Source: Octopus sinensis
Lineage: Eukaryota
Direction of reading: 5' to 3'
NCBI RefSeq assembly: GCF_006345805.1
Contig: NC_043005.1
Location: 104,904,001 to 104,968,000 of the forward strand
Length of the DNA stretch: 64,000 nucleotides
Part shown: in pieces, positions 4,930 through 60,976 of the stretch
How the letters are laid out: each line of letters opens with the position of its first letter
Position numbering within the stretch: the stretch's first letter is position 1
Translations under genes and position numbers: made by a program
Notes under the pieces: generated by a model
What the model was told of the DNA's origin: nothing
Database searches by the model: none
Seen by the model: the letters and a program-made list of their open reading frames with translations, nothing else

Positions 4930-7230
<2,301 letters not shown>

Positions 7231-8437: not shown

Positions 8438-8632
8438 CACAGGGAGCTATAAATATCAAGTAATATAACAAAAACCAAAATCCTCCCCTGGTTTTAGTTC
8501 ACAACTACCACACCACTCATTAACAACTACCATGAAAATTTAATAATAAACTCTATTGTCCCACAACCAATTCGACAAGCATAACAATTTGATTTCACTA
8601 TTATCACCTCAGAACTGCCAAAATTGTTACTT

Positions 8633-9046
8633 ATTTCTATATTGCCCACAAGGGGCTAAACATAGAGGGGACGAACAAGGACAGACAAACGGATTAAGTC
8701 AATTACATCGATCCCAGTGCGTAACTGGTACTTAATTTATTGACTCCGAAAGGATGAAACGCAAAGTCGACCTCGGCGGAATTTGAACTCAGAACGTAAC
8801 GGCAGACGAAATACCTATTTCTTTACTACCCACAAGGGGCTAAACACAGAGGGGACAAATAGGGACAGATAAACGGATTAAGTCGATCATATCGACTCCA
8901 GTGCGTAACTGGTACTTATTTAATCGACCCCGAAAGGATGAAAAGCAAAGTCGACCACGGTGGAATTTGAACTCAGAACGTAGCGGCAGACGGAATACTG
9001 CTAAGCATTTCGCCCGCCGTGCTAACGTTTCTGCCAGCTCGCCGCC
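8633..9046 (-). mobile_element. SINE family A, full copy (8817-9046) plus a tandem partial second unit (8633-8816)
   Basis: Two consecutive bodies joined at gacgaaatacct|atttctttactaccc. The head ggcggcgagctggcagaaacgttagcac has A-box-like and B-box-like (gagttcaaattcc) motifs. Confidence 0.88.
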
Positions 9047-15269: not shown

Positions 15270-16172
15270 TGCACGTATGCATGTGTATGTGCAGTATTCG
15301 GAGTCAGTACATGTACAGATTTGCACGTGTTGCTCCGTATTCTCATGCATATAGCTGCATATCTAGACATGCGCATATATACTTAAATGATAAACTTAAG
15401 GAAAGTTCTACAAATTTTACAGCTCCAGTGATGGATTGGATCTGTAGTTTTCGAATCAGCTTTCTCCTTACTGGTTTCAAGAAGCTTAATTTCTCAAGAT
15501 TGGTTTTTAGGTAGTGTGTTATAAATCCCATTGCCCCAATAATTACAGGTATAAACCTGAACTTGCAATCTGGGTAGAGTAACTGCTGGTGTCTCAATAG
15601 TTCAGCGTAGATATTTTCTTCTTCGCTGATCTTTAGCTTTATGTTAACATTCGCTGGGCAGCTGATCTCCACAACTGTGCATAGTTTCTCTTCTCTATCA
15701 CAAATTATTATATGAGGTATATTGTGCTTACATTTTATTGAGAGTCTCACTGGGACATTCCACCAATACTCCTTTTTATTATGAGTGACGATGGCTTCCA
15801 CCATACTGAGGGTTTTTATTTCGTTGTCCTCTGAACTATCCTTCCGACGGATCTGATTATACAGTGTCTTAAATGCAACATCATGTCTCATCAGTAAGTA
15901 ATACTGTGATGACATTATTGCACAGCTGCTTATGATGTGAATGATATCTTCGATATTAATTCCACAAAGTCTGCATCGGTTGTCACATTTTGCTGCATTT
16001 CCTACATCTCTGTCCCTTTTGTTCATCATGTATTTGGTTGATATTTCCTGTTCCTGGATTGCAAACACATACCCTTCAAAGGTGGAGGTAGTAATCCAGT
16101 TGTTGATCCATGATGGACTGCTTTAGTGATCAATGTTACTATCCTCTCGGAGCTTTCTACTAACATATCCAC
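15270..16172 (-). mobile_element. R4/Dong-like (RLE) non-LTR retrotransposon 3' fragment, family R-A
   Basis: ORF 15343-16068: FAIQEQEI...CRLCGINIEDIIHIISSC (CCHC knuckle), RHD, then KHNIPHIIICDREEKLCTVVEISCP (degenerate PD..D endonuclease) and FIPVIIGAMG. Confidence 0.88.
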
Positions 16173-20195: not shown

Positions 20196-20639
20196 TGTCT
20201 GTTTAAAACTGTTTAAATATTGTAAAAGATGACACGTCCCAAATGCGACATGTGTGTGTGTGTGTGTGTGCATGTACGTATGAGCGTGCGAGTTTTTATA
20301 TATCCTACTTCTTCAGTCCTTCATCCTTTCACCCCTACTCCCCTTCCCTTCTTCCCTCTTTCTCCCTCCCTCCTTCCCTCTTCCCCTTCCCTCTGCTCCC
20401 TCACTCCCTCACTCCCCTTCTCTCTCCCTCTTTCCTCCCTCCTCCCCCCTCCTCCCCTTCCTTCTCCCCCTCCTCCCCCCTCCGCTCCTCTTCACCCCTC
20501 TCCTCCCCTCTTCTTCCCCTCCCCTTCTATCCCCCCTCTTCTCCCCCTCCCCCTCTTCTCCTCACTACACCACACGACTTTACACATCACATCATATATG
20601 ATGTGCCATACTAATACATACACCAACTAATACATACTA

Positions 20640-20990
20640 ATACGTACTAATACATACTAATACATACACCAACCCTATACATACACACGTCCAGATCCCT
20701 CATACGCACTTATACTCTCTCATACACACACACACACACTTATACTTACTAATACGTACTAATACATACTAATACATACACCAACCCCATACATACGCAC
20801 GTCCAGACCAATCCTACGCACTAATACTCTCTCATACACACACACCACACACACACACACCACACACACACCCTTATACATACTAATACATACATCAACC
20901 CTATACATACACACGTCCAGACCCCTCCTACGCACTATTAGCTGGTCCTTCAACCCTATTATCAACCCTATTATCAACCCTATTATCTCT
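20640..20990. repeat. ~113-bp minisatellite x~3 followed by (caaccctattat)x3
   Basis: actaatacatacaccaaccc..acgtccaga recurs at 20656, 20768 and 20882. Confidence 0.8.
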
Positions 20991-22188: not shown

Positions 22189-22189
<1 letters not shown>

Positions 22190-22264
<75 letters not shown>

Positions 22265-22277
22265 GGATAGATAGATC

Positions 22278-22325
<48 letters not shown>

Positions 22326-22335
22326 GATAGGTATG

Positions 22336-22434
<99 letters not shown>

Positions 22435-22439
22435 GTATG

Positions 22440-22525
<86 letters not shown>
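22190..22525. repeat. (GATA)n microsatellite
   Basis: Direct reading; another long (GATA)n tract at ~33985-34110. Confidence 0.97.
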
Positions 22526-22527
<2 letters not shown>

Positions 22528-41520: not shown

Positions 41521-41601
<81 letters not shown>

Positions 41602-41704
41602 ATAATGAGGGAGATAAATTGATATTAATTTTAATATCAATTTAAACCAGTAGTCTAGCATACAAAAAATCTGAAAAATCAGAGAAAATTCTAATACATA
41701 TGTA

Positions 41705-42029
41705 TATTTACAGGACAAGGCTGCTAGGTAGTCTGCCGTATGCTAGAAATAGATCATCAACGATCAAACTACACAAAGAAAGTTCTCTAGAGGAAAAATC
41801 AGCGAACACCGGAACCAAATTTGGCGGGCAGGACAGATGATAATTTATAATTCTGTTTTTTATATAAATATTCATCTGTCCGGCCCGCCAAATTTGGTTC
41901 CGGTGTTCGCTGAATTTTTCCTCTAGAGAACTTCTTTGTAGTTTGATCGTTGATGATCTATTTCTAGCACGCGGCAGACTACCTAGCAGACTACCTAGCA
42001 GACTACCTAGCAGTCTTGCCCTGTAAATA
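41705..42029. mobile_element. Fold-back MITE-like element (~140-bp TIR arms, ~31-bp AT spacer, TA ends)
   Basis: tatttacaggacaaggctgctaggtagtctgcc...ggacagatga is mirrored by tcatctgtcc...ctagcagtcttgccctgtaaata. The right arm has a triplicated cagactacctag. Confidence 0.85.
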
Positions 42030-42190
42030 CACACACACATATATATATATACGCTGCTAAAAAAAGAGCAGCAGCCATTTTCGCAATTGTCGAAATCTGA
42101 CTGCGCCATTTATAATAATCATTCTTTATACTCTCTCCATACTCACACACAAGCATATATATATATATTATATAATTATATATATATATA

Positions 42191-42234
<44 letters not shown>

Positions 42235-42338
42235 AAATAATGAGGAGATAAATTGATATTAATTTTAATATCAATTTAAACCAGTAGTCTAGCATACAAA
42301 AAATCTGAAAAATCAGAGAAAATTCTAATACATATGTA

Positions 42339-42661
42339 TATTTACAGGACAAGGCTGCTAGGTAGTCTGCCGTATGCTAGAAATAGATCATCAACGATCA
42401 AACTACAAAGAAAGTTCTCTAGAGGAAAAATCAGCGAACACCGGAACCAAATTTGGCGGGCAGGACAGATGATAATTTATAATTCTGTTTTTTATATAAA
42501 TATTCATCTGTCCGGCCCGCCAAATTTGGTTCCGGTGTTCGCTGAATTTTTCCTCTAGAGAACTTCTTTGTAGTTTGATCGTTGATGATCTATTTCTAGC
42601 ACGCGGCAGACTACCTAGCAGACTACCTAGCAGACTACCTAGCAGTCTTGCCCTGTAAATA
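42339..42661. mobile_element. Second copy of the fold-back MITE-like element
   Basis: Near-identical to 41705-42029. Confidence 0.85.
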
Positions 42662-42670
42662 CACACACAC

Positions 42671-42717
<47 letters not shown>

Positions 42718-54548: not shown

Positions 54549-55056
54549 CTCTCTCTCTCTCTCTTCCCTCTCACTCTCACTCTCTCTCAATCTCTCTCTC
54601 TCCCTGTATATTAATCTGTATGTGTGTGTATGTGAGTAGGACAAGTTATAAATAATGGTTATTACATATTTTTCTTTTCTTAAAACAAATTTGGTTTACA
54701 GATGCTTTCATTATTCATTGTAAGTAAATTACTGATCGATTTATTCAATCGGTCTATTGATCAGCTGAGAAAAATGGGACGATCTAAAAGAAACATAATG
54801 CTACTTTTGTCAGAGCCATTTCTGCATATGACCATTATTCATAACGTGTCTTATATATCACTGTGTGTAAAAACCAGTTTGTCTGGAGCCCATCCATGGC
54901 TTCGCAATATAGAAGTGTGATGAACCATAACCTTGGACCATAAGAACACTCGGAGACCTTCACTAATCTAAACAATATTGTTATTCTGACTGTGCCAACA
55001 AAGAGCTTATGAAGTAAATTTACCCAGATTGAAAATCCCTCGCTGTTAGCTATATA

Positions 55057-55116
<60 letters not shown>

Positions 55117-55142
55117 TGTATGTATGTATGTATGTAGGTATG

Positions 55143-55185
<43 letters not shown>

Positions 55186-55321
55186 GTATATACATATATC
55201 ACAATCAAGGAATGGCCATAATAGGCCATTCACCCACTAGAAATAACAGCCAAAGCTTCAACCGCAAAATAACATTAATTCCGCAAACCAGGAGAAAATT
55301 AAAAAAACATTTACCCTGTAA

Positions 55322-55426
55322 TTTCTTATACGATGCACCGTTTCATCTATTGTTTAATGGTAAACTAACCTGATTAAATTAAATCAAGTCAATCTTCCAT
55401 AGGCCGATAGATTCATCAGTAAGAAA
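55322..55426 (-). ncRNA. Type I hammerhead ribozyme, copy L1 (intact core)
   Basis: Minus strand: UUUCUUA-CUGAUGA-AUCUAU..AUAGAU-GAAA-CG(GUGCAU)CG-UA^UAAGAAA. Confidence 0.88.
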
Positions 55427-55806
55427 CAGCCAAGATCCGAGCAGATATTATCACGAGGCACCTCTGTCCCTGCCTCGGCAATATCTGACCTAAAATTTTC
55501 AAATCATCGCACTCGCGCCAAATTTATCGGCAGCAAATATAAGCCGCCGATTCCATTACGGAATTAACCAGAAAATTCATAATTAATCAATATAGGGTGG
55601 CAAAAAATTTCGTAGAATTTATTTGCCACCAGCGGCCTAGTGGGAAAAAAATTAAATAGTCATAGACCATTTATAAGTTCAACATCACATCAGGAATGGC
55701 CATAATAGGCCATTCACCCACTAGAAATAACAGCCAAAGCTTCACCAGCAAAATAACATTAATTCCGCAAACCAGGAGAAAATTAAAAAAAACATTTACC
55801 CTGTAA

Positions 55807-55909
55807 TTCCTTATACGATGCACCGTTCATCTATTGTTTAATGGTAAACTAACCTGATTAAATTAAATCAAGTCAATCTTCCATAGGCCGATAGATCATC
55901 AGTAAGAAA
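55807..55909 (-). ncRNA. Type I hammerhead ribozyme, copy L2 (GAA instead of GAAA; one base lost in stem II)
   Basis: Same motif with single-base deletions. Confidence 0.7.
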
Positions 55910-56288
55910 CAGCCAAGATCCAGCAGATATTATCACGAGGCACCTCTGTCCCTGCCTCGGCATATCTGACCTAAAATTTTCAAATCATCGCACTCGCGCC
56001 AAATTTATCGGCAGCAAATATAAGCCGCCGATTCCATTACGGAATTAACCAGAAAATTCATAATTAATCAATATAGGGTGGCAAAAAATTTCGTAGAATT
56101 TATTTGCCACCAGCGGCCTAGTGGGAAAAAAATTAAATAGTCATAGACCATTTATAAGTTCAACATCACAATCAAGGAATGGCCATAATAGGCCATTCAC
56201 CCACTAGAAATAACAGCCAAAGCTTCAACCGCAAAATAACATTAATTCCCGCAACCAGGAGAAAATTAAAAAAACATTTACCCTGTAA

Positions 56289-56392
56289 TTTCTTATACGA
56301 TGCACCGTTTCATCTATTGTTTAAGGTAAACTAACCTGATTAAATTAAATCAAGTCAATCTTCCATAGGCCGATAGATTCATCAGTAAGAAA
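56289..56392 (-). ncRNA. Type I hammerhead ribozyme, copy L3 (intact core)
   Basis: tttcttatacgatgcaccgtttcatctat...atagattcatcagtaagaaa on +. Confidence 0.85.
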
Positions 56393-56771
56393 CAGCCAGA
56401 TCCGAGCAGATATTATCACGAGGCCCTCTGTCCCTGCCTCGGCAATATTGACCTAACATTTTCCAAATCATCGCAACCCGCGCCAAATTTATCGGCAGCA
56501 AATAATATAAGCCGTCGATTCCATTACGGAATAACCAGAAAATTCATAATAATCAATATAGGGTGGCAAAAAATTTCGTAGAATTTATTTGCCACCAGCG
56601 GCCTAGTGGGAAAAAAATTAAATAGTCATAGACCATTTATAAGTTCAACATCACAATCAAGGAATGGCCATAATAGGCCCTTCACCCCTAGAAATAACAG
56701 CCAAAGCTTCAACCGCAAAATAACATTAATTCCGCAAACCAGGGAAATTTAAAAAAAACATTACCCTGTAA

Positions 56772-56875
56772 TTTCTTATACGATGCACCGTTTCATCTAT
56801 TGTTTAATGGTAAACTAACCTGATTAATTAAATCAAGTCAATCTTCCATAGGCCGATAGATTCATCAGTAAGAAA
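56772..56875 (-). ncRNA. Type I hammerhead ribozyme, copy L4 (intact core)
   Basis: As L1. Confidence 0.85.
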
Positions 56876-57252
56876 CAGCCAAGATCCTAGCAGATATTAT
56901 CACGAGGCACCTCTGTCCCTGCCTCGCAATATCTGACCTAAAATTTTCAAATCATCGCACTCGCGCCAAATTTATCGGCAGCAAATATAAGCGGCCGATT
57001 CCATTACAGAATTAACCAGAAAATTCATAATTAATCAATATAGGGTGCAAAAATTTCGTAGAATTTATTTGCCACCAGCGGCCTAGTGGGAAAAAAATTA
57101 AATAGTCCATAGACCATTTATAAGTTCAACATCACAATCAAGGATGGCCATAATAGGCCATTCACCACTAGAAATAACAGCCAAAGCCTCAACCGCAAAA
57201 TAACATTAATTCCGCACACAGGAGAAAATTAAAAAAAACATTTACCCTGTAA

Positions 57253-57358
57253 TTTCTTATACGATGCCACCGTTTCATCTATTGTTTAATGGTAAACTAA
57301 CCTGATTAAATTAAATCAGTCAATCTTCCATAGGCCGATAGATTCATCAGTAAGAGAA
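57253..57358 (-). ncRNA. Type I hammerhead ribozyme, copy L5 (core intact; insertions in loop III and stem I)
   Basis: acgatgccaccgtttcatc...gattcatcagtaagagaa on +. Confidence 0.78.
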
Positions 57359-57840
57359 CAGCCAAGATCCGAGCAGATATTATCACGAGGCACCTCTGTC
57401 CCTGCCTCGCAATATCTGACCTAAAATTTTCAAATCATCGCACTCGCGCCAAATTTCGGCAGCAAATAACGTAAATGTTTTTTTAATTTTCTCCTTGTTT
57501 GCGGAATTAATGTTATTTTGCGTTTGAAGCTTTGGCTGTTATTTCTAGTGGGTGAATGGCCTATATGGCCATTCCTTGATTGTGATGTTGAACTTATAAA
57601 TGGTCTATGACTATTTAATTTTTTTCCCACTAGGCCGCTGGTGGCAATATAATTCTACGAAATTTTTTGCCACCCTATATTGATTAATTATGAATTTTCT
57701 GGTTAATTCCGTTGGAATCGGCGGCTTATATTTGCTGCCGATAAATTTGGCGCGAGTGCGATGATTTGAAAATTTTAGGTCAGATATTGCCGAGGCAGGG
57801 ACAGAGGTGCCTCGTGATAAATCTGCTCGGATCTTGGCTG

Positions 57841-57944
57841 TTTCTTACTGATGAATCTATCGGCCTATGGAAGATTGACTTGATTTAATTTAATCAGGTT
57901 AGTTTACCATTAACAATAGATGAAACGGTGCATCGTATAAGAAA
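57841..57944 (+). ncRNA. Type I hammerhead ribozyme, copy R1 (intact core)
   Basis: tttctta-ctgatga-atctat...atagat-gaaa-cggtgcatcg-ta^taagaaa; predicted cut after 57937. Confidence 0.88.
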
Positions 57945-58319
57945 TTACAGGGTAAATGTTTTTTTAATTTCTCCCTGGTTTGCGGAATTAATGTTATTTT
58001 GCGGTTGAAGCTTTGGCTGTTATTTCTAGTGGGTGATGGCCTATTATGGCCATTCCTTGATTGTGATGTTGAACTTATAAATGGTCTATGACTATTTAAT
58101 TTTTTTCCCACTAGGCGCTGGTGGCAAATAAATTCTACGAATTTTTTGCCACCCTATATGATTAATTATGAATTTTTGGTTAATTCCGTAATGGAATCGG
58201 CGGCTTATTTTGCTGCCGATAAATTTGGCGCGAGTGCGATGATTGTGAAAATTAGGTAGATATTGCCGAGGCAGGGACAGAGGTGCCTCGTGTGATAATA
58301 TCTGCTCGGATCTTGGCTG

Positions 58320-58421
58320 TTTCTTACTGATGAATCTATCGGCCTATGGAAGATTGACTTGATTTATTAATCAGGTTAGTTTACCATTAAACAATAGATG
58401 AACGGTGCATCGTATAAGAAA
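58320..58421 (+). ncRNA. Type I hammerhead ribozyme, copy R2 (GAA instead of GAAA)
   Basis: Same motif with one A missing. Confidence 0.72.
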
Positions 58422-58799
58422 TTACAGGGTAAATGTTTTTTTAATTTTCTCCTGGTTTGCGGAATTAATGTTATTTTGCGGTTGAAGCTTTGGCTGTTAT
58501 TTCTAGTGGGTGAATGGCCTATTATGGCAATCCTTGATTGTGATGTTGAAATTATAAATGGTCTATGACTATTTAATTTTTTTCCCACTAGGCCGCAGGT
58601 GGCAAATAAATTCTACGAAATTTTTGCCACCCTATATTGATTAATTATGAATTTTCTGGTTAATTCCGTAATGGAATCGGCGGCTTATATTTGCTGCCGA
58701 TAAATTTGGCGCGAGTGCGATGATTTGAAAATTTTAGGTCAGATATTGCGAGGCAGGGACAGAGGTGCCTCGTGATAATATCTGCTCGGATCTTGGCTG

Positions 58800-58904
58800 T
58801 TTCTTACTGATGAATCTATCGGCCTATGGAAGATTGACTTGATTTAATTTAATCAGGTTAGTTTACCATTAAACAATAGATGAAACGGTGCATCGTATAA
58901 GAAA
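58800..58904 (+). ncRNA. Type I hammerhead ribozyme, copy R3 (intact, cleanest copy)
   Basis: Stem I 58800-58806/58898-58904 (7 bp); CTGATGA 58807-58813; stem II ATCTAT 58814-58819 / ATAGAT 58876-58881; GAAA 58882-58885; GTA triplet 58895-58897. Confidence 0.9.
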
Positions 58905-59285
58905 TTACAGGGTAAATGTTTTTTTAATTTTCTCCTGGTTTGCGGAATTAATGTTATTTTGCGGTTGAAGCTTTGGCTGTTATTTCTAGTGGGTGAATGG
59001 CCTATTATGGCCATTCCTTGATTGTGATGTTGAACTTATAAATGGTCTATGACTATTTAATTTTTTTCCCACTAGGCCGCTGGTGGCAAATAAATTCTAC
59101 GAAATTTTTTGCCACCCTATATTGATTAATTATGAATTTTCTGGTTAATTCCGTAATGGAATCGGCGGCTTATATTTGCTGCCGATAAATTTGGCGCGAG
59201 TGCGATGATTTGAAAATTTTAGGTCAGATATTGCCGAGGCAGGGACAGAGGTGCCTCGTGATAATATCTGCTCGGATCTTGGCTG

Positions 59286-59389
59286 TTTCTTACTGATGAA
59301 TCTATCGGCCTATGGAAGATTGACTTGATTTAATTTAATCAGGTTAGTTTACCATTAAACAATAGATGAACGGTGCATCGTATAAGAAA
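59286..59389 (+). ncRNA. Type I hammerhead ribozyme, copy R4 (GAA instead of GAAA)
   Basis: Same motif with one A missing. Confidence 0.72.
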
Positions 59390-59637
59390 TTACAGGGTAA
59401 ATGTTTTTTTAATTTTCTCCTGGTTTGCGGAATTAATGTTATTTTGCGGTTGAAGCTTTGGCTGTTATTTCTAGGGGTGAATGGCCTATTATGGCCATTC
59501 CTTGATGTTGAACTTATAAATGGTCTATGACTATTTAATTTTTTCCACTAGGCCGCTGGTGGCAAATAAATTCTACGAAATTTTTTGCCACCCCTAGTGA
59601 TTAATTATGTATATATATATATGTATATATATTATAT

Positions 59638-59691
<54 letters not shown>

Positions 59692-59697
<6 letters not shown>

Positions 59698-60976
59698 GTT
59701 GTCAGGAAAGTTCGTGCCGATTAATAGTAGCTTACCTTTCGACTTATTTTAGAACATAGTTGAGTCCATAAAATAGGATTTGACTACACCTCCATTTAGA
59801 GCAGAGCTTAAGCTATCTTGTCGGGAGAAGGCTTATGTTCCTATAACCTGTGTTAATTCTGTAACCCTTTAAAATGGAAGATAAGAAAGTTCATTTTCGG
59901 CACTTGATGCTTTCTTTTTCCGTAAAGGGAAAAATACCTCACAAGCAACCAAAGAAATATGCGCAGTTTACGGTGATGTTTCTTTATCCGAAAGAACAGT
60001 ACGGAAGTGGTTCGCAAGGTTCCGAGCTGGAGATTGTAACCTTATTGATAAAGAGCAATCAGGCAGACCATCCGCTACAGATGAAGACCAAATCAAGTCA
60101 TTAATTGAGAATAACCCACATTGCACAACCCGAGAATTGGCAGAAAGCCTCAACCTATCAAAATCCGTCGTTCATGAGCACCTGGTAAAGCTTGGATACA
60201 CAAATCGTTACGATGTATGGGTACCACATAAGTTGAGTGAGAAGAACTTTTTGGATCGCATTTCCATCTGTGATTCGCTTTATAAACTGAATGAAAACGC
60301 GCATTTTTTTAAAGCAAATTGTGAAAGATGATGAAAAATGGATTACCTACCGAAATGTTCAGAGAAAGCGATTCTGGAGTAAGCGACATGAGACACCCTT
60401 AGCTATCCCAAAAGTGGGCCTTCACCCTAAAAAAGTCTTGCTTTGTGTTTGGTGGGATTGGAAAGAAATTCTGTACTATGTGCTTCTCCCAAGTAACCAG
60501 ACAATTAATTCTGAGAAACACTGCACACAACTGGACGAGTTAAAAGCAGCAATTCAAGAGAAACGTCCAGAATTGGCCAACAGGAAAGGTGTTGTTTTCC
60601 AACATGATAATGCAAGACCGCACGTTTTTTTGGGAACCAGCAAAAATTGCTGCAGCTCGTCTGGGATGTTCTACCCCACTCTCCATTTTCCCCAGATATT
60701 GCTCCTTCTGATTTCCACTTATTCAGGTCTCTGCAGAATAGTCTTAACGGTAAAAATTTCAATTCCTTGGATGACATAAAAAGATACCTTGATGAATTCT
60801 TTGCCATGAAACCACCTCAATTCTGGGAAGAGGGTATTTTCAAGTTAAAGGAAAGATGGAGACGCATTGTGCAACAAAATAGTTCGTATTTGGTTGATTA
60901 AAAATGTAATGGCAAGTATTTATTGACCTTTTTCTTTTCTTTAAAAATCGGCACGAACTTTCCAGACAACCCTATA
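59692..60976 (+). mobile_element. Full-length mariner (DD34D) transposon, ~1.28 kb, TA target duplication, inserted in (TA)n
   Basis: TA|TTGGGTTGTCAGGAAAGTTCGTGCCGATT (59694-59722) and AATCGGCACGAACTTTCCAGACAACCCTA|TA (ends 60974): 29-bp TIRs with 2 mismatches. Confidence 0.95.
59874..60901 (+). pseudogene. Mariner transposase, three single-base frameshifts, no in-frame stops seen
   Basis: MEDKKVHFRHLML../FRKGKNTSQATKEICAVYG..WFARFRAG..SGRP..WVPHKL../LKQIVKDDEKW..HDNARPH../..HSPFSPDIAPSDFHLF; 34 residues between the last two catalytic Asp. Confidence 0.92.

Follow-up and report, generated by a model that had tools for sequence, protein, structure and literature searches.

A 486-nt hammerhead ribozyme repeat in Octopus sinensis, probably a non-autonomous retrozyme arranged in two opposed arrays

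Introduction

What kind of element is a non-coding sequence of 486 nucleotides (nt) that is repeated about nine times at one octopus locus and contains a type I hammerhead ribozyme (HHR) motif? The question was raised by a 64,000-nt stretch of Octopus sinensis DNA (RefSeq assembly GCF_006345805.1, contig NC_043005.1, positions 104,904,001–104,968,000 of the forward strand), which was analysed as a whole and is called the window; positions are counted from its first letter. A preliminary description had read the repeat as a retrozyme-like tandem array. The locus is probably a non-autonomous retrozyme without long terminal repeats (LTRs), that is, a satellite-like retroelement with a type I hammerhead. 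Retrozymes are already known in molluscs (mussel, PMC7229834) and in many other phyla, and the octopus repeat adds to this known class and is not a categorically new kind of element. It stands out by its long helix II, by a double-hammerhead mode that is predicted to be obligate, and by a pair of opposed arrays within a (TA)n target. A literature search found no HHR or retrozyme from octopus, as the preliminary description had supposed, and a 2026 repeat annotation of O. vulgaris mentions neither.

Results

Organization of the repeat block

The repeat block was composed of ~9.2 copies of a 486-nt consensus unit, as determined by Tandem Repeats Finder (TRF) and by BLAST within the window, which bears out the unit length and the approximate copy number noted before. 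The single tandem array proposed earlier was not recovered. TRF resolved two adjoining arrays of period 483–485 (55198–57468 and 57471–59609), and their consensus units were reverse complements of each other. The block was therefore two opposed sub-arrays of ~4.5 and 4.7 units, placed head to head and diverging from 57469/70 (57468 to 55198 on the minus strand, 57471 to 59609 on the plus strand). Long inverted matches supported this arrangement, with arms that were 91–100% complementary over more than 2 kb and a spacer of 2 nt. The unit copies were defined by cutting the block at the predicted cleavage sites and aligning the resulting eleven pieces, which are designated M0 to M4 in the minus-strand sub-array and P0 to P4 in the plus-strand sub-array (Table 1). 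Individual units were 483–486 nt long and 95–99.8% identical to the consensus by TRF, BLAST, and unit alignment.

The GC content of the unit was 37%, and its longest stop-free stretch was 60 codons, which makes the unit non-coding. The 53- and 60-residue antisense pseudo-open reading frames gave no word-sharing candidates in protein databases, and a search of a library of 1.84 billion representative proteins gave a single marginal match (E 5.7e-4), which was read as noise. The block consisted solely of the 486-nt unit and contained no terminal repeats; a primer-binding site (PBS) and a polypurine tract (PPT) were not specifically searched. The unit is thus non-coding and LTR-free, as metazoan non-LTR retrozymes are, and its length and GC content lie within their range (~150–450 bp, up to 972 bp in a 2026 survey; GC below 45–50%). 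BLAST of the consensus found no further copy in the window beyond the block. Exact and gapped DNA patterns gave no genuine copy in three scans of metagenome, GTDB, and viral contigs, collections without searchable cephalopod genomes. The sole match of the gapped core, at 831–928 of contig L003 (Ga0272441_10310692), was rejected; it lay on a GC-rich bacterial metagenome contig and lacked the helices, and about one chance match was expected.

The hammerhead motif

The motif was 5'-CUG-UUUCUUA / CUGAUGA / AUCUAU-(55-nt hairpin)-AUAGAU / GAA / ACGG-UGCA-UCGU / A^ / UAAGAAA-UUA-CAG, with the predicted cleavage site at ^. Helix I was open and helices II and III were closed, which is the three-helix topology of type I. 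Stem I was formed by 7 base pairs, a UUA bulge, and then 3 more pairs, so that the extension past a 3-nt bulge reported earlier was confirmed. Helix II was formed by 6 base pairs and an extended hairpin of ~55 nt. Helix III was formed by ACGG and UCGU through three Watson–Crick pairs and one GU pair, with the loop UGCA. A pattern search located the previously quoted motifs where they had been placed, including the cleavage site 3' of A58897. The motif was present on one strand of the unit only, and none was found on the complement with our own descriptor or with Rfam.

The preliminary description had assigned a complete type I hammerhead to every unit. Nine motifs were indeed present, but the catalytic positions (C3–A9, G12–A14, A15.1–U16.1, and A at H17) were complete in only six of the nine. 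In P1, P3, and M3a, GAA replaced GAAA as assembled, and M3a also lacked A10.1. Li et al. 2026 recognize a retrozyme by a tandem repeat in which two or more complete HHRs follow one another, and M0, M1, and M2 formed such a run on the minus strand. Of these, M1 and M2 bracketed a full monomer (56778–56296).

The exact pattern was found in six copies against 0.01 expected. Our own type I descriptor, applied to both strands of the 64 kb, returned the six complete copies only, even when relaxed. As a chance control, 2 × 20 Mb of first-order Markov sequence was built from the unit or from the window; the descriptor gave no match in it at stems of at least 5/4/3, and 11 and 1 matches at the relaxed 4/3/2. 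By a rough analytic estimate, the motif would arise by chance at ~3e-11 per position, or ~0.2 times in a 2.7-Gb genome, even without the added demand for a tandem unit as long as a retrozyme. The hammerhead motif is far beyond chance.

Table 1. Coordinates of the repeat block, its sub-arrays, hammerhead motifs, and flanks in the window
Feature	Position	Strand	Remarks
Whole repeat block	55198..59609		~9.2 × 486-nt non-coding unit, 37% GC; TRF, BLAST, alignment, open reading frame check
Minus-strand sub-array	55198..57468, read 57468->55198	-	M0 (unit 276–486), M1, M2, M3a, M3b, M4 (unit 1–131)
Plus-strand sub-array	57471..59609	+	P0 (unit 15–486), P1, P2, P3, P4 (unit 1–240)
Head-to-head junction (AC)	57469..57470		Joins two 5'-truncated ends; unit ~276 meets unit 15, not mirror-symmetric
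Reference HHR, P2/P3 boundary	58795..58912	+	Complete core; predicted cleavage after A58897
HHR of P0	57836..57952	+	Complete core; predicted cleavage after 57937
HHR of P1	58315..58429	+	GAA for GAAA, damaged core or assembly indel; site after 58414
HHR of P3	59281..59397	+	GAA for GAAA as assembled; site after 59382
HHR of M0	57245..57363	-	Core complete; 1-nt insertion in stem I 5' strand, extra G in loop 3; site 57260/57259
HHR of M1	56764..56880	-	Complete; site 56779/56778
HHR of M2	56281..56397	-	Complete; site 56296/56295
HHR of M3a	55799..55914	-	Damaged: A10.1 lost, GAA for GAAA, A->G in stem I 3' strand
HHR of M3b	55314..55431	-	Complete; site 55329/55328
Left flank, presumed target	55051..55197		Compound (TA)n/(TATG)n microsatellite
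Right flank, presumed other target half	59610..59694		(TA)n microsatellite

Predicted folds of the monomer, circle, and dimer

The linear monomer had a minimum free energy (MFE) of -154.5 kcal/mol and a z-score of -6.4, and its predicted fold included all the hairpins listed in the preliminary description. The z-score of the complement was -6.75. The plus strand was 40 kcal/mol more stable, but this asymmetry was rejected as a sign of the RNA strand because shuffled sequences behaved likewise and the z-scores were equal. The circular monomer was folded into a multibranched structure with an MFE of -148.9 kcal/mol, 64% of its bases paired, and a z-score of -5.6. The monomer and the circle are thus highly self-paired, as is typical of retrozymes. 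In the circular fold, stem I paired unit positions 1–8 with 388–395, and therefore the ends of the cleaved monomer are predicted to lie side by side.

Helix III was worth just -1.2 kcal/mol by itself. For a single ribozyme, the active fold (-29.4 kcal/mol) lay 2.7 kcal/mol above an alternative at -32.1 kcal/mol, in which UGAUG of the core paired with CAUCG of helix III. The sequence ACGGUGCAUCGU is a quasi-palindrome with the palindromic loop UGCA, and two copies of it formed a 12-bp duplex of -19.5 kcal/mol. When a 622-nt transcript with two ribozymes was folded without constraints, the MFE structure was a complete double hammerhead. The helix III between the two ribozymes had pair probabilities of 0.91–0.99, and the stems I were swapped, each 5' strand pairing downstream of the cleavage site of the other ribozyme. 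Both helices II were formed and both CUGAUGA cores were unpaired. The circular monomer gave a probability of ~0.02 for intramolecular helix III and of ~0.28 for the core-sequestering pairing. Because the double hammerhead is the MFE structure of the two-ribozyme transcript and helix III is rare in the circle, we infer from these models that cleavage would occur as a dimer in multimeric transcripts and that the ribozyme would be largely inactive in the circle. Double hammerheads have precedents in newt and in avocado sunblotch viroid. An axolotl case has been described as well (PMC7229834).

Insertion architecture and (TA)n flanks

In both sub-arrays the sense 3' end pointed outward and abutted a TA-type microsatellite, and the 5'-truncated end was central. 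The two arms were unequal in length (2271 and 2139 nt), their outer ends fell at unit positions 131 and 240, and the unique flanks beyond the two arrays were unrelated to each other. The outer ends lay at short AU-type microhomologies (...GUGAU/ATAT and ...UUAUG/TATA). No poly(A) was present, and no target-site duplication (TSD) was discernible at the block because both flanks are (TA)n. Twin priming during target-primed reverse transcription (TPRT) gives this layout, in which two segments have outward-facing sense 3' ends and are fused at their 5'-truncated ends. Insertions of Penelope-like elements (PLEs) contain partial tandem copies next to an inverted copy that is truncated at its 5' end, and they lie in (TA)n targets (Craig et al. 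2021, PMC8557442); the block architecture and its (TA)n target match this published PLE insertion structure.

A Helitron was also considered for the block, with TC at the left end, a hairpin and CTAG near the right end, and TA flanks. However, the unit ran 12 nt past the CTAG, which was private to P4, and the block ended at internal unit positions; the candidate was rejected.

Variation among the copies

The copies differed by 50 substitutions and 50 indel events. Among the indels, 42 were deletions (a 5:1 bias) and 40 were 1 nt long. This excess suggests uncorrected long-read consensus errors in the repeat, so the GAA lesions may not be real. The HHR domain made up 24% of the aligned bases and contained 1 of the 50 substitutions, or 1 of 24 clustered events (P ~0.012), whereas the indels were not depleted there (11 of 50). 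The avoidance of the HHR domain by substitutions hints weakly at selection. Most variants were confined to one unit each, a pattern that a single burst from a uniform template would be expected to leave.

Discussion

A retrozyme and its proposed mode of propagation

Every property of a metazoan non-LTR retrozyme that could be examined from sequence was found in the octopus repeat, with the exception of detection by Rfam. The earlier interpretation was thus supported in part, and its word family was drawn from one locus. Four features had escaped the preliminary description: the inversion between the two arrays, the (TA)n on either side, the weakness of helix III, and the damage to some of the cores.

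In the proposed mechanism, each sub-array would be transcribed outward as a multimeric RNA, and the ribozyme, in its predicted fold, would cut after GUA at each unit boundary. Neighbouring ribozymes would pair via a shared helix III of 12 bp, which they can do because ACGGUGCAUCGU is a quasi-palindrome, and would act as a double hammerhead. The released 486-nt monomer, its ends held by stem I, could then be closed into a circle by a host RtcB-type ligase, which would join ...GCAUCGUA to UAAGAAAUUACAG. The rarity of helix III and the partly sequestered core of the circular fold would keep the circle from being cut again. Either the circle or a multimer may be copied by the reverse transcriptase of a PLE, with priming at the two nicks of a (TA)n target and with twin priming combined with rolling-circle copying. 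Copying of this kind would leave a pair of tandem arrays that meet at their 5'-truncated ends in the middle and border (TA)n at their outer 3' ends, which is the geometry of the block. PLE enzymes have been proposed to turn retrozyme circles into tandem cDNA (PMC7229834; Li et al. 2026), and the annotations of octopus genomes contain PLEs, some of them from young families (PMC13282606, PMC8967140). A more specific reading, in which the locus is the fossil of a single integration event (rolling-circle TPRT at both (TA)n nicks) and the ribozyme is a multimer-only switch that is silent in the circle, is offered tentatively and is held to be possible but doubtful.

Several observations weigh against the retrozyme interpretation. 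The Rfam check proposed for the motif, with Hammerhead_1, failed, since no Rfam hammerhead model matched at the gathering score in the window, at E ≤ 10 in 55000–59800, or in 58780–58920 alone (141 nt). The miss is likely due to the ~55-nt helix II insertion and the A10.1–U11.1 pair; other ribozyme families were not found in the Rfam scans either. The 10.1–11.1 pair is A-U and not the usual G-C, and the large insertion in helix II replaces the usual loop 2, so that the canonical loop–loop contact is absent. The UUA bulge of stem I and an internal loop of helix II, which lie at a comparable distance from the core in the model, could substitute for this tertiary contact, and the HHRs of mussel retrozymes likewise lack canonical loop contacts. 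Three of the nine cores were broken as assembled, and the plus-strand sub-array contained no two consecutive intact HHRs because intact and GAA copies alternated. Covariation evidence was lacking for any helix because the copies were near-identical, with one substitution in the HHR domain. The association with the target alone has P ~0.05, because (TA)n covers ~5% of the window. No second locus, relative, or transcript was found in the window or in the collections searched, which lacked searchable cephalopod genomes, and family and mobile therefore refer to one locus. Finally, a Pfam scan of 131 stop-to-stop open reading frames (ORFs) found mariner domains only and no reverse transcriptase (RT) or GIY-YIG gene in the window; an ORF with a PLE-type RT and GIY-YIG, by which an autonomous PLE is recognized, was absent from the unit and from the window.

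Alternative explanations

The damaged cores raise the question of whether the block is a dead relic, a retrozyme-derived satellite that has lost transcription and self-cleavage and persists as repetitive DNA. A 1-nt deletion in the essential GAAA of three of the nine cores and the further damage in M3a would fit such a relic, and so would the A10.1–U11.1 pair and the weak helix III, which may lower activity, and the failure to find other copies or transcripts in the 64-kb window or in protein collections without searchable cephalopod genomes. This explanation nevertheless seems unlikely. The array is young because its copies are 95–99.8% identical, the GAA lesions may be long-read noise (half of the differences were indels, mostly of 1 nt, with the 5:1 deletion bias), substitutions avoided the HHR domain, and the run M0–M1–M2 was intact. 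An ordinary satellite with a coincidental likeness to a hammerhead would accord with the missing Rfam match and with the lack of conservation data, but it is extremely improbable: no motif of even lower quality occurred in 40 Mb of matched random sequence, the analytic estimate was ~3e-11 per position, and the palindromic loop 3 gave a perfect double hammerhead as the MFE structure.

Other doubts concern the head-to-head layout, which could be an assembly artefact (a fold-back or chimeric long read) or the product of a DNA inversion at a later time; in either case a single direct array expanded by unequal crossing-over would be the true locus. Long palindromes are a known artefact of long-read assemblies, and the indel-rich differences suggest an unpolished region. 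Tandem and inverted structures of the PLE type have also been reported to confuse assemblies (PMC8557442). A fold-back, however, should be a true mirror image, whereas the junction joined unit ~276 to unit 15, the arms were 2271 and 2139 nt long, the outer ends fell at unit 131 and unit 240, and the unique flanks were unrelated. A fold-back artefact is unlikely because nothing was mirror-symmetric, and an inversion would have required one of its breaks to fall precisely on the edge of the array; the proposal as a whole is judged improbable. The same inverted arms, separated by 2 nt and 91–100% complementary along more than 2 kb, could make the locus a source of hairpin RNA, in which read-through would give a self-complementary RNA of ~2.1 kb that silences the retrozyme family through endogenous small interfering RNAs or PIWI-interacting RNAs. 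This suggestion is drawn purely from the geometry and is very unlikely; it would be an added role of the retrozyme locus and not an alternative origin.

Implications

If confirmed, the retrozyme interpretation extends ribozyme-made circular RNAs and retrozymes to cephalopods, whose repeat annotations do not mention them. It would also show that hammerheads with a long helix II go undetected by curated covariance models, and such elements are probably under-counted. The opposed arrays with their 3' ends outward in (TA)n are the footprint expected of PLE-style twin-primed copying, which was hitherto hypothesised (PMC7229834). The behaviour predicted here, in which multimers form a double hammerhead and the core is blocked in circles, would offer a testable answer to the question raised in PMC7229834 of why circles escape re-cleavage. 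If the single-event reading were true, the locus would give direct structural support for PLE-type mobilisation, and it would explain how metazoan retrozyme circles escape self-cleavage.

Other features of the window

A degenerate mariner/Mos1-like DNA transposon followed directly after the right (TA)n (59696–60900, plus strand), with HTH_48 in 59885–60328 and Transposase_1 in 60291–60776 in different frames. An ORF of 259 codons without a stop lay at 15346–16122 on the minus strand; it had a CCHC-like knuckle, matched nothing in Pfam, and is probably the C-terminal part of a long interspersed nuclear element (LINE). Its best named relative was Octopus bimaculoides LOC106878562 (62% identity), and other relatives were found on the ENA contigs ERZ25067903 and ERZ23872300.

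The window was very rich in microsatellites, and perfect (TA)≥5 runs covered ~5% of it. Near-identical tandem duplications were present at 41597–42684 and 5452–6989, and neither contained a hammerhead motif. Their units were 632–634 bp at 97–100% identity, and 1141–1143 bp at 99–100% identity, interleaved with long (AT)n tracts. Further repeats were (AGAT)85 at 22189–22527, a 184-bp × 2 repeat at 8628–8998, and a 112-bp × 2.8 repeat at 20626–20937. Sub-threshold Rfam matches to mir-297, mir-466, mir-3149, and mir-1277 at 55047–55208 lay wholly on the TA/TG microsatellite and were discarded as low-complexity artefacts. Look-alikes of the A and B boxes of RNA polymerase III promoters, seen by eye, had the wrong order and spacing, and a scan for bacterial promoters and terminators was set aside as irrelevant for a eukaryote.

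Comparison with known systems

The octopus unit resembles the metazoan non-LTR retrozymes in carrying one type I HHR, in being repeated in tandem at a length of a few hundred nucleotides, in having a GC content below 45%, and in lacking ORFs and LTRs. As in those retrozymes, the monomer or circle is highly self-paired and the HHR domain is not buried by the remaining molecule. Metazoan retrozyme units in coral, mussel, and axolotl are 170–400 nt long (Cervera & de la Pena 2020, PMC7229834) and have a low GC content (PMC7229834), while a wider range of 51–972 bp is given for animals in a preprint (Li et al. 2026). The 486-nt unit is longer than the former range and lies within the latter. It further differs from the retrozymes of PMC7229834 by its helix II extension of ~55 nt and its A-U pair at 10.1–11.1. 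Its predicted need for a dimeric mode is also different, since PMC7229834 ties that mode to amphibians and not to invertebrates, and its host is a cephalopod, a group that was not sampled there.

The HHRs of newt satellite 2 and of axolotl likewise have a short unstable helix III, and their activity is expected to arise from the pairing of two ribozymes in a multimer. The octopus unit has no sequence similarity to them and a much longer helix II, and its helix III of 4 bp with the palindromic UGCA loop gives a shared helix of 12 bp.

Twin priming of L1, reportedly described by Ostertag and Kazazian in 2001, also gives two segments that face the target with their sense 3' ends and are fused internally at their 5'-truncated ends. 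In contrast to L1, each octopus segment is multimeric, which implies rolling-circle or multimer templates, and there is no poly(A) and no discernible TSD. PLEs and their pseudo-LTR hammerheads (Cervera & de la Pena 2014; PMC8557442; Li et al. 2026) share with the octopus block partial tandems with an inverted 5'-truncated copy, HHR-bearing non-coding sequence, and a microsatellite target, which is (TA)n in Naiad and Neptune. Unlike PLEs, the octopus unit has no RT/GIY-YIG ORF, and its HHR is of canonical size, whereas that of PLEs is a minimal variant.

Plant LTR retrozymes and viroid-like circular RNAs differ from the octopus unit in their type III HHRs, their LTR/PBS/PPT features, and their GC-rich sequences, and viroid-like RNAs have ribozymes in both polarities, whereas the octopus unit has them in one polarity only. 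What the octopus unit would have in common with them is the processing of multimers by hammerheads, followed by circularisation.

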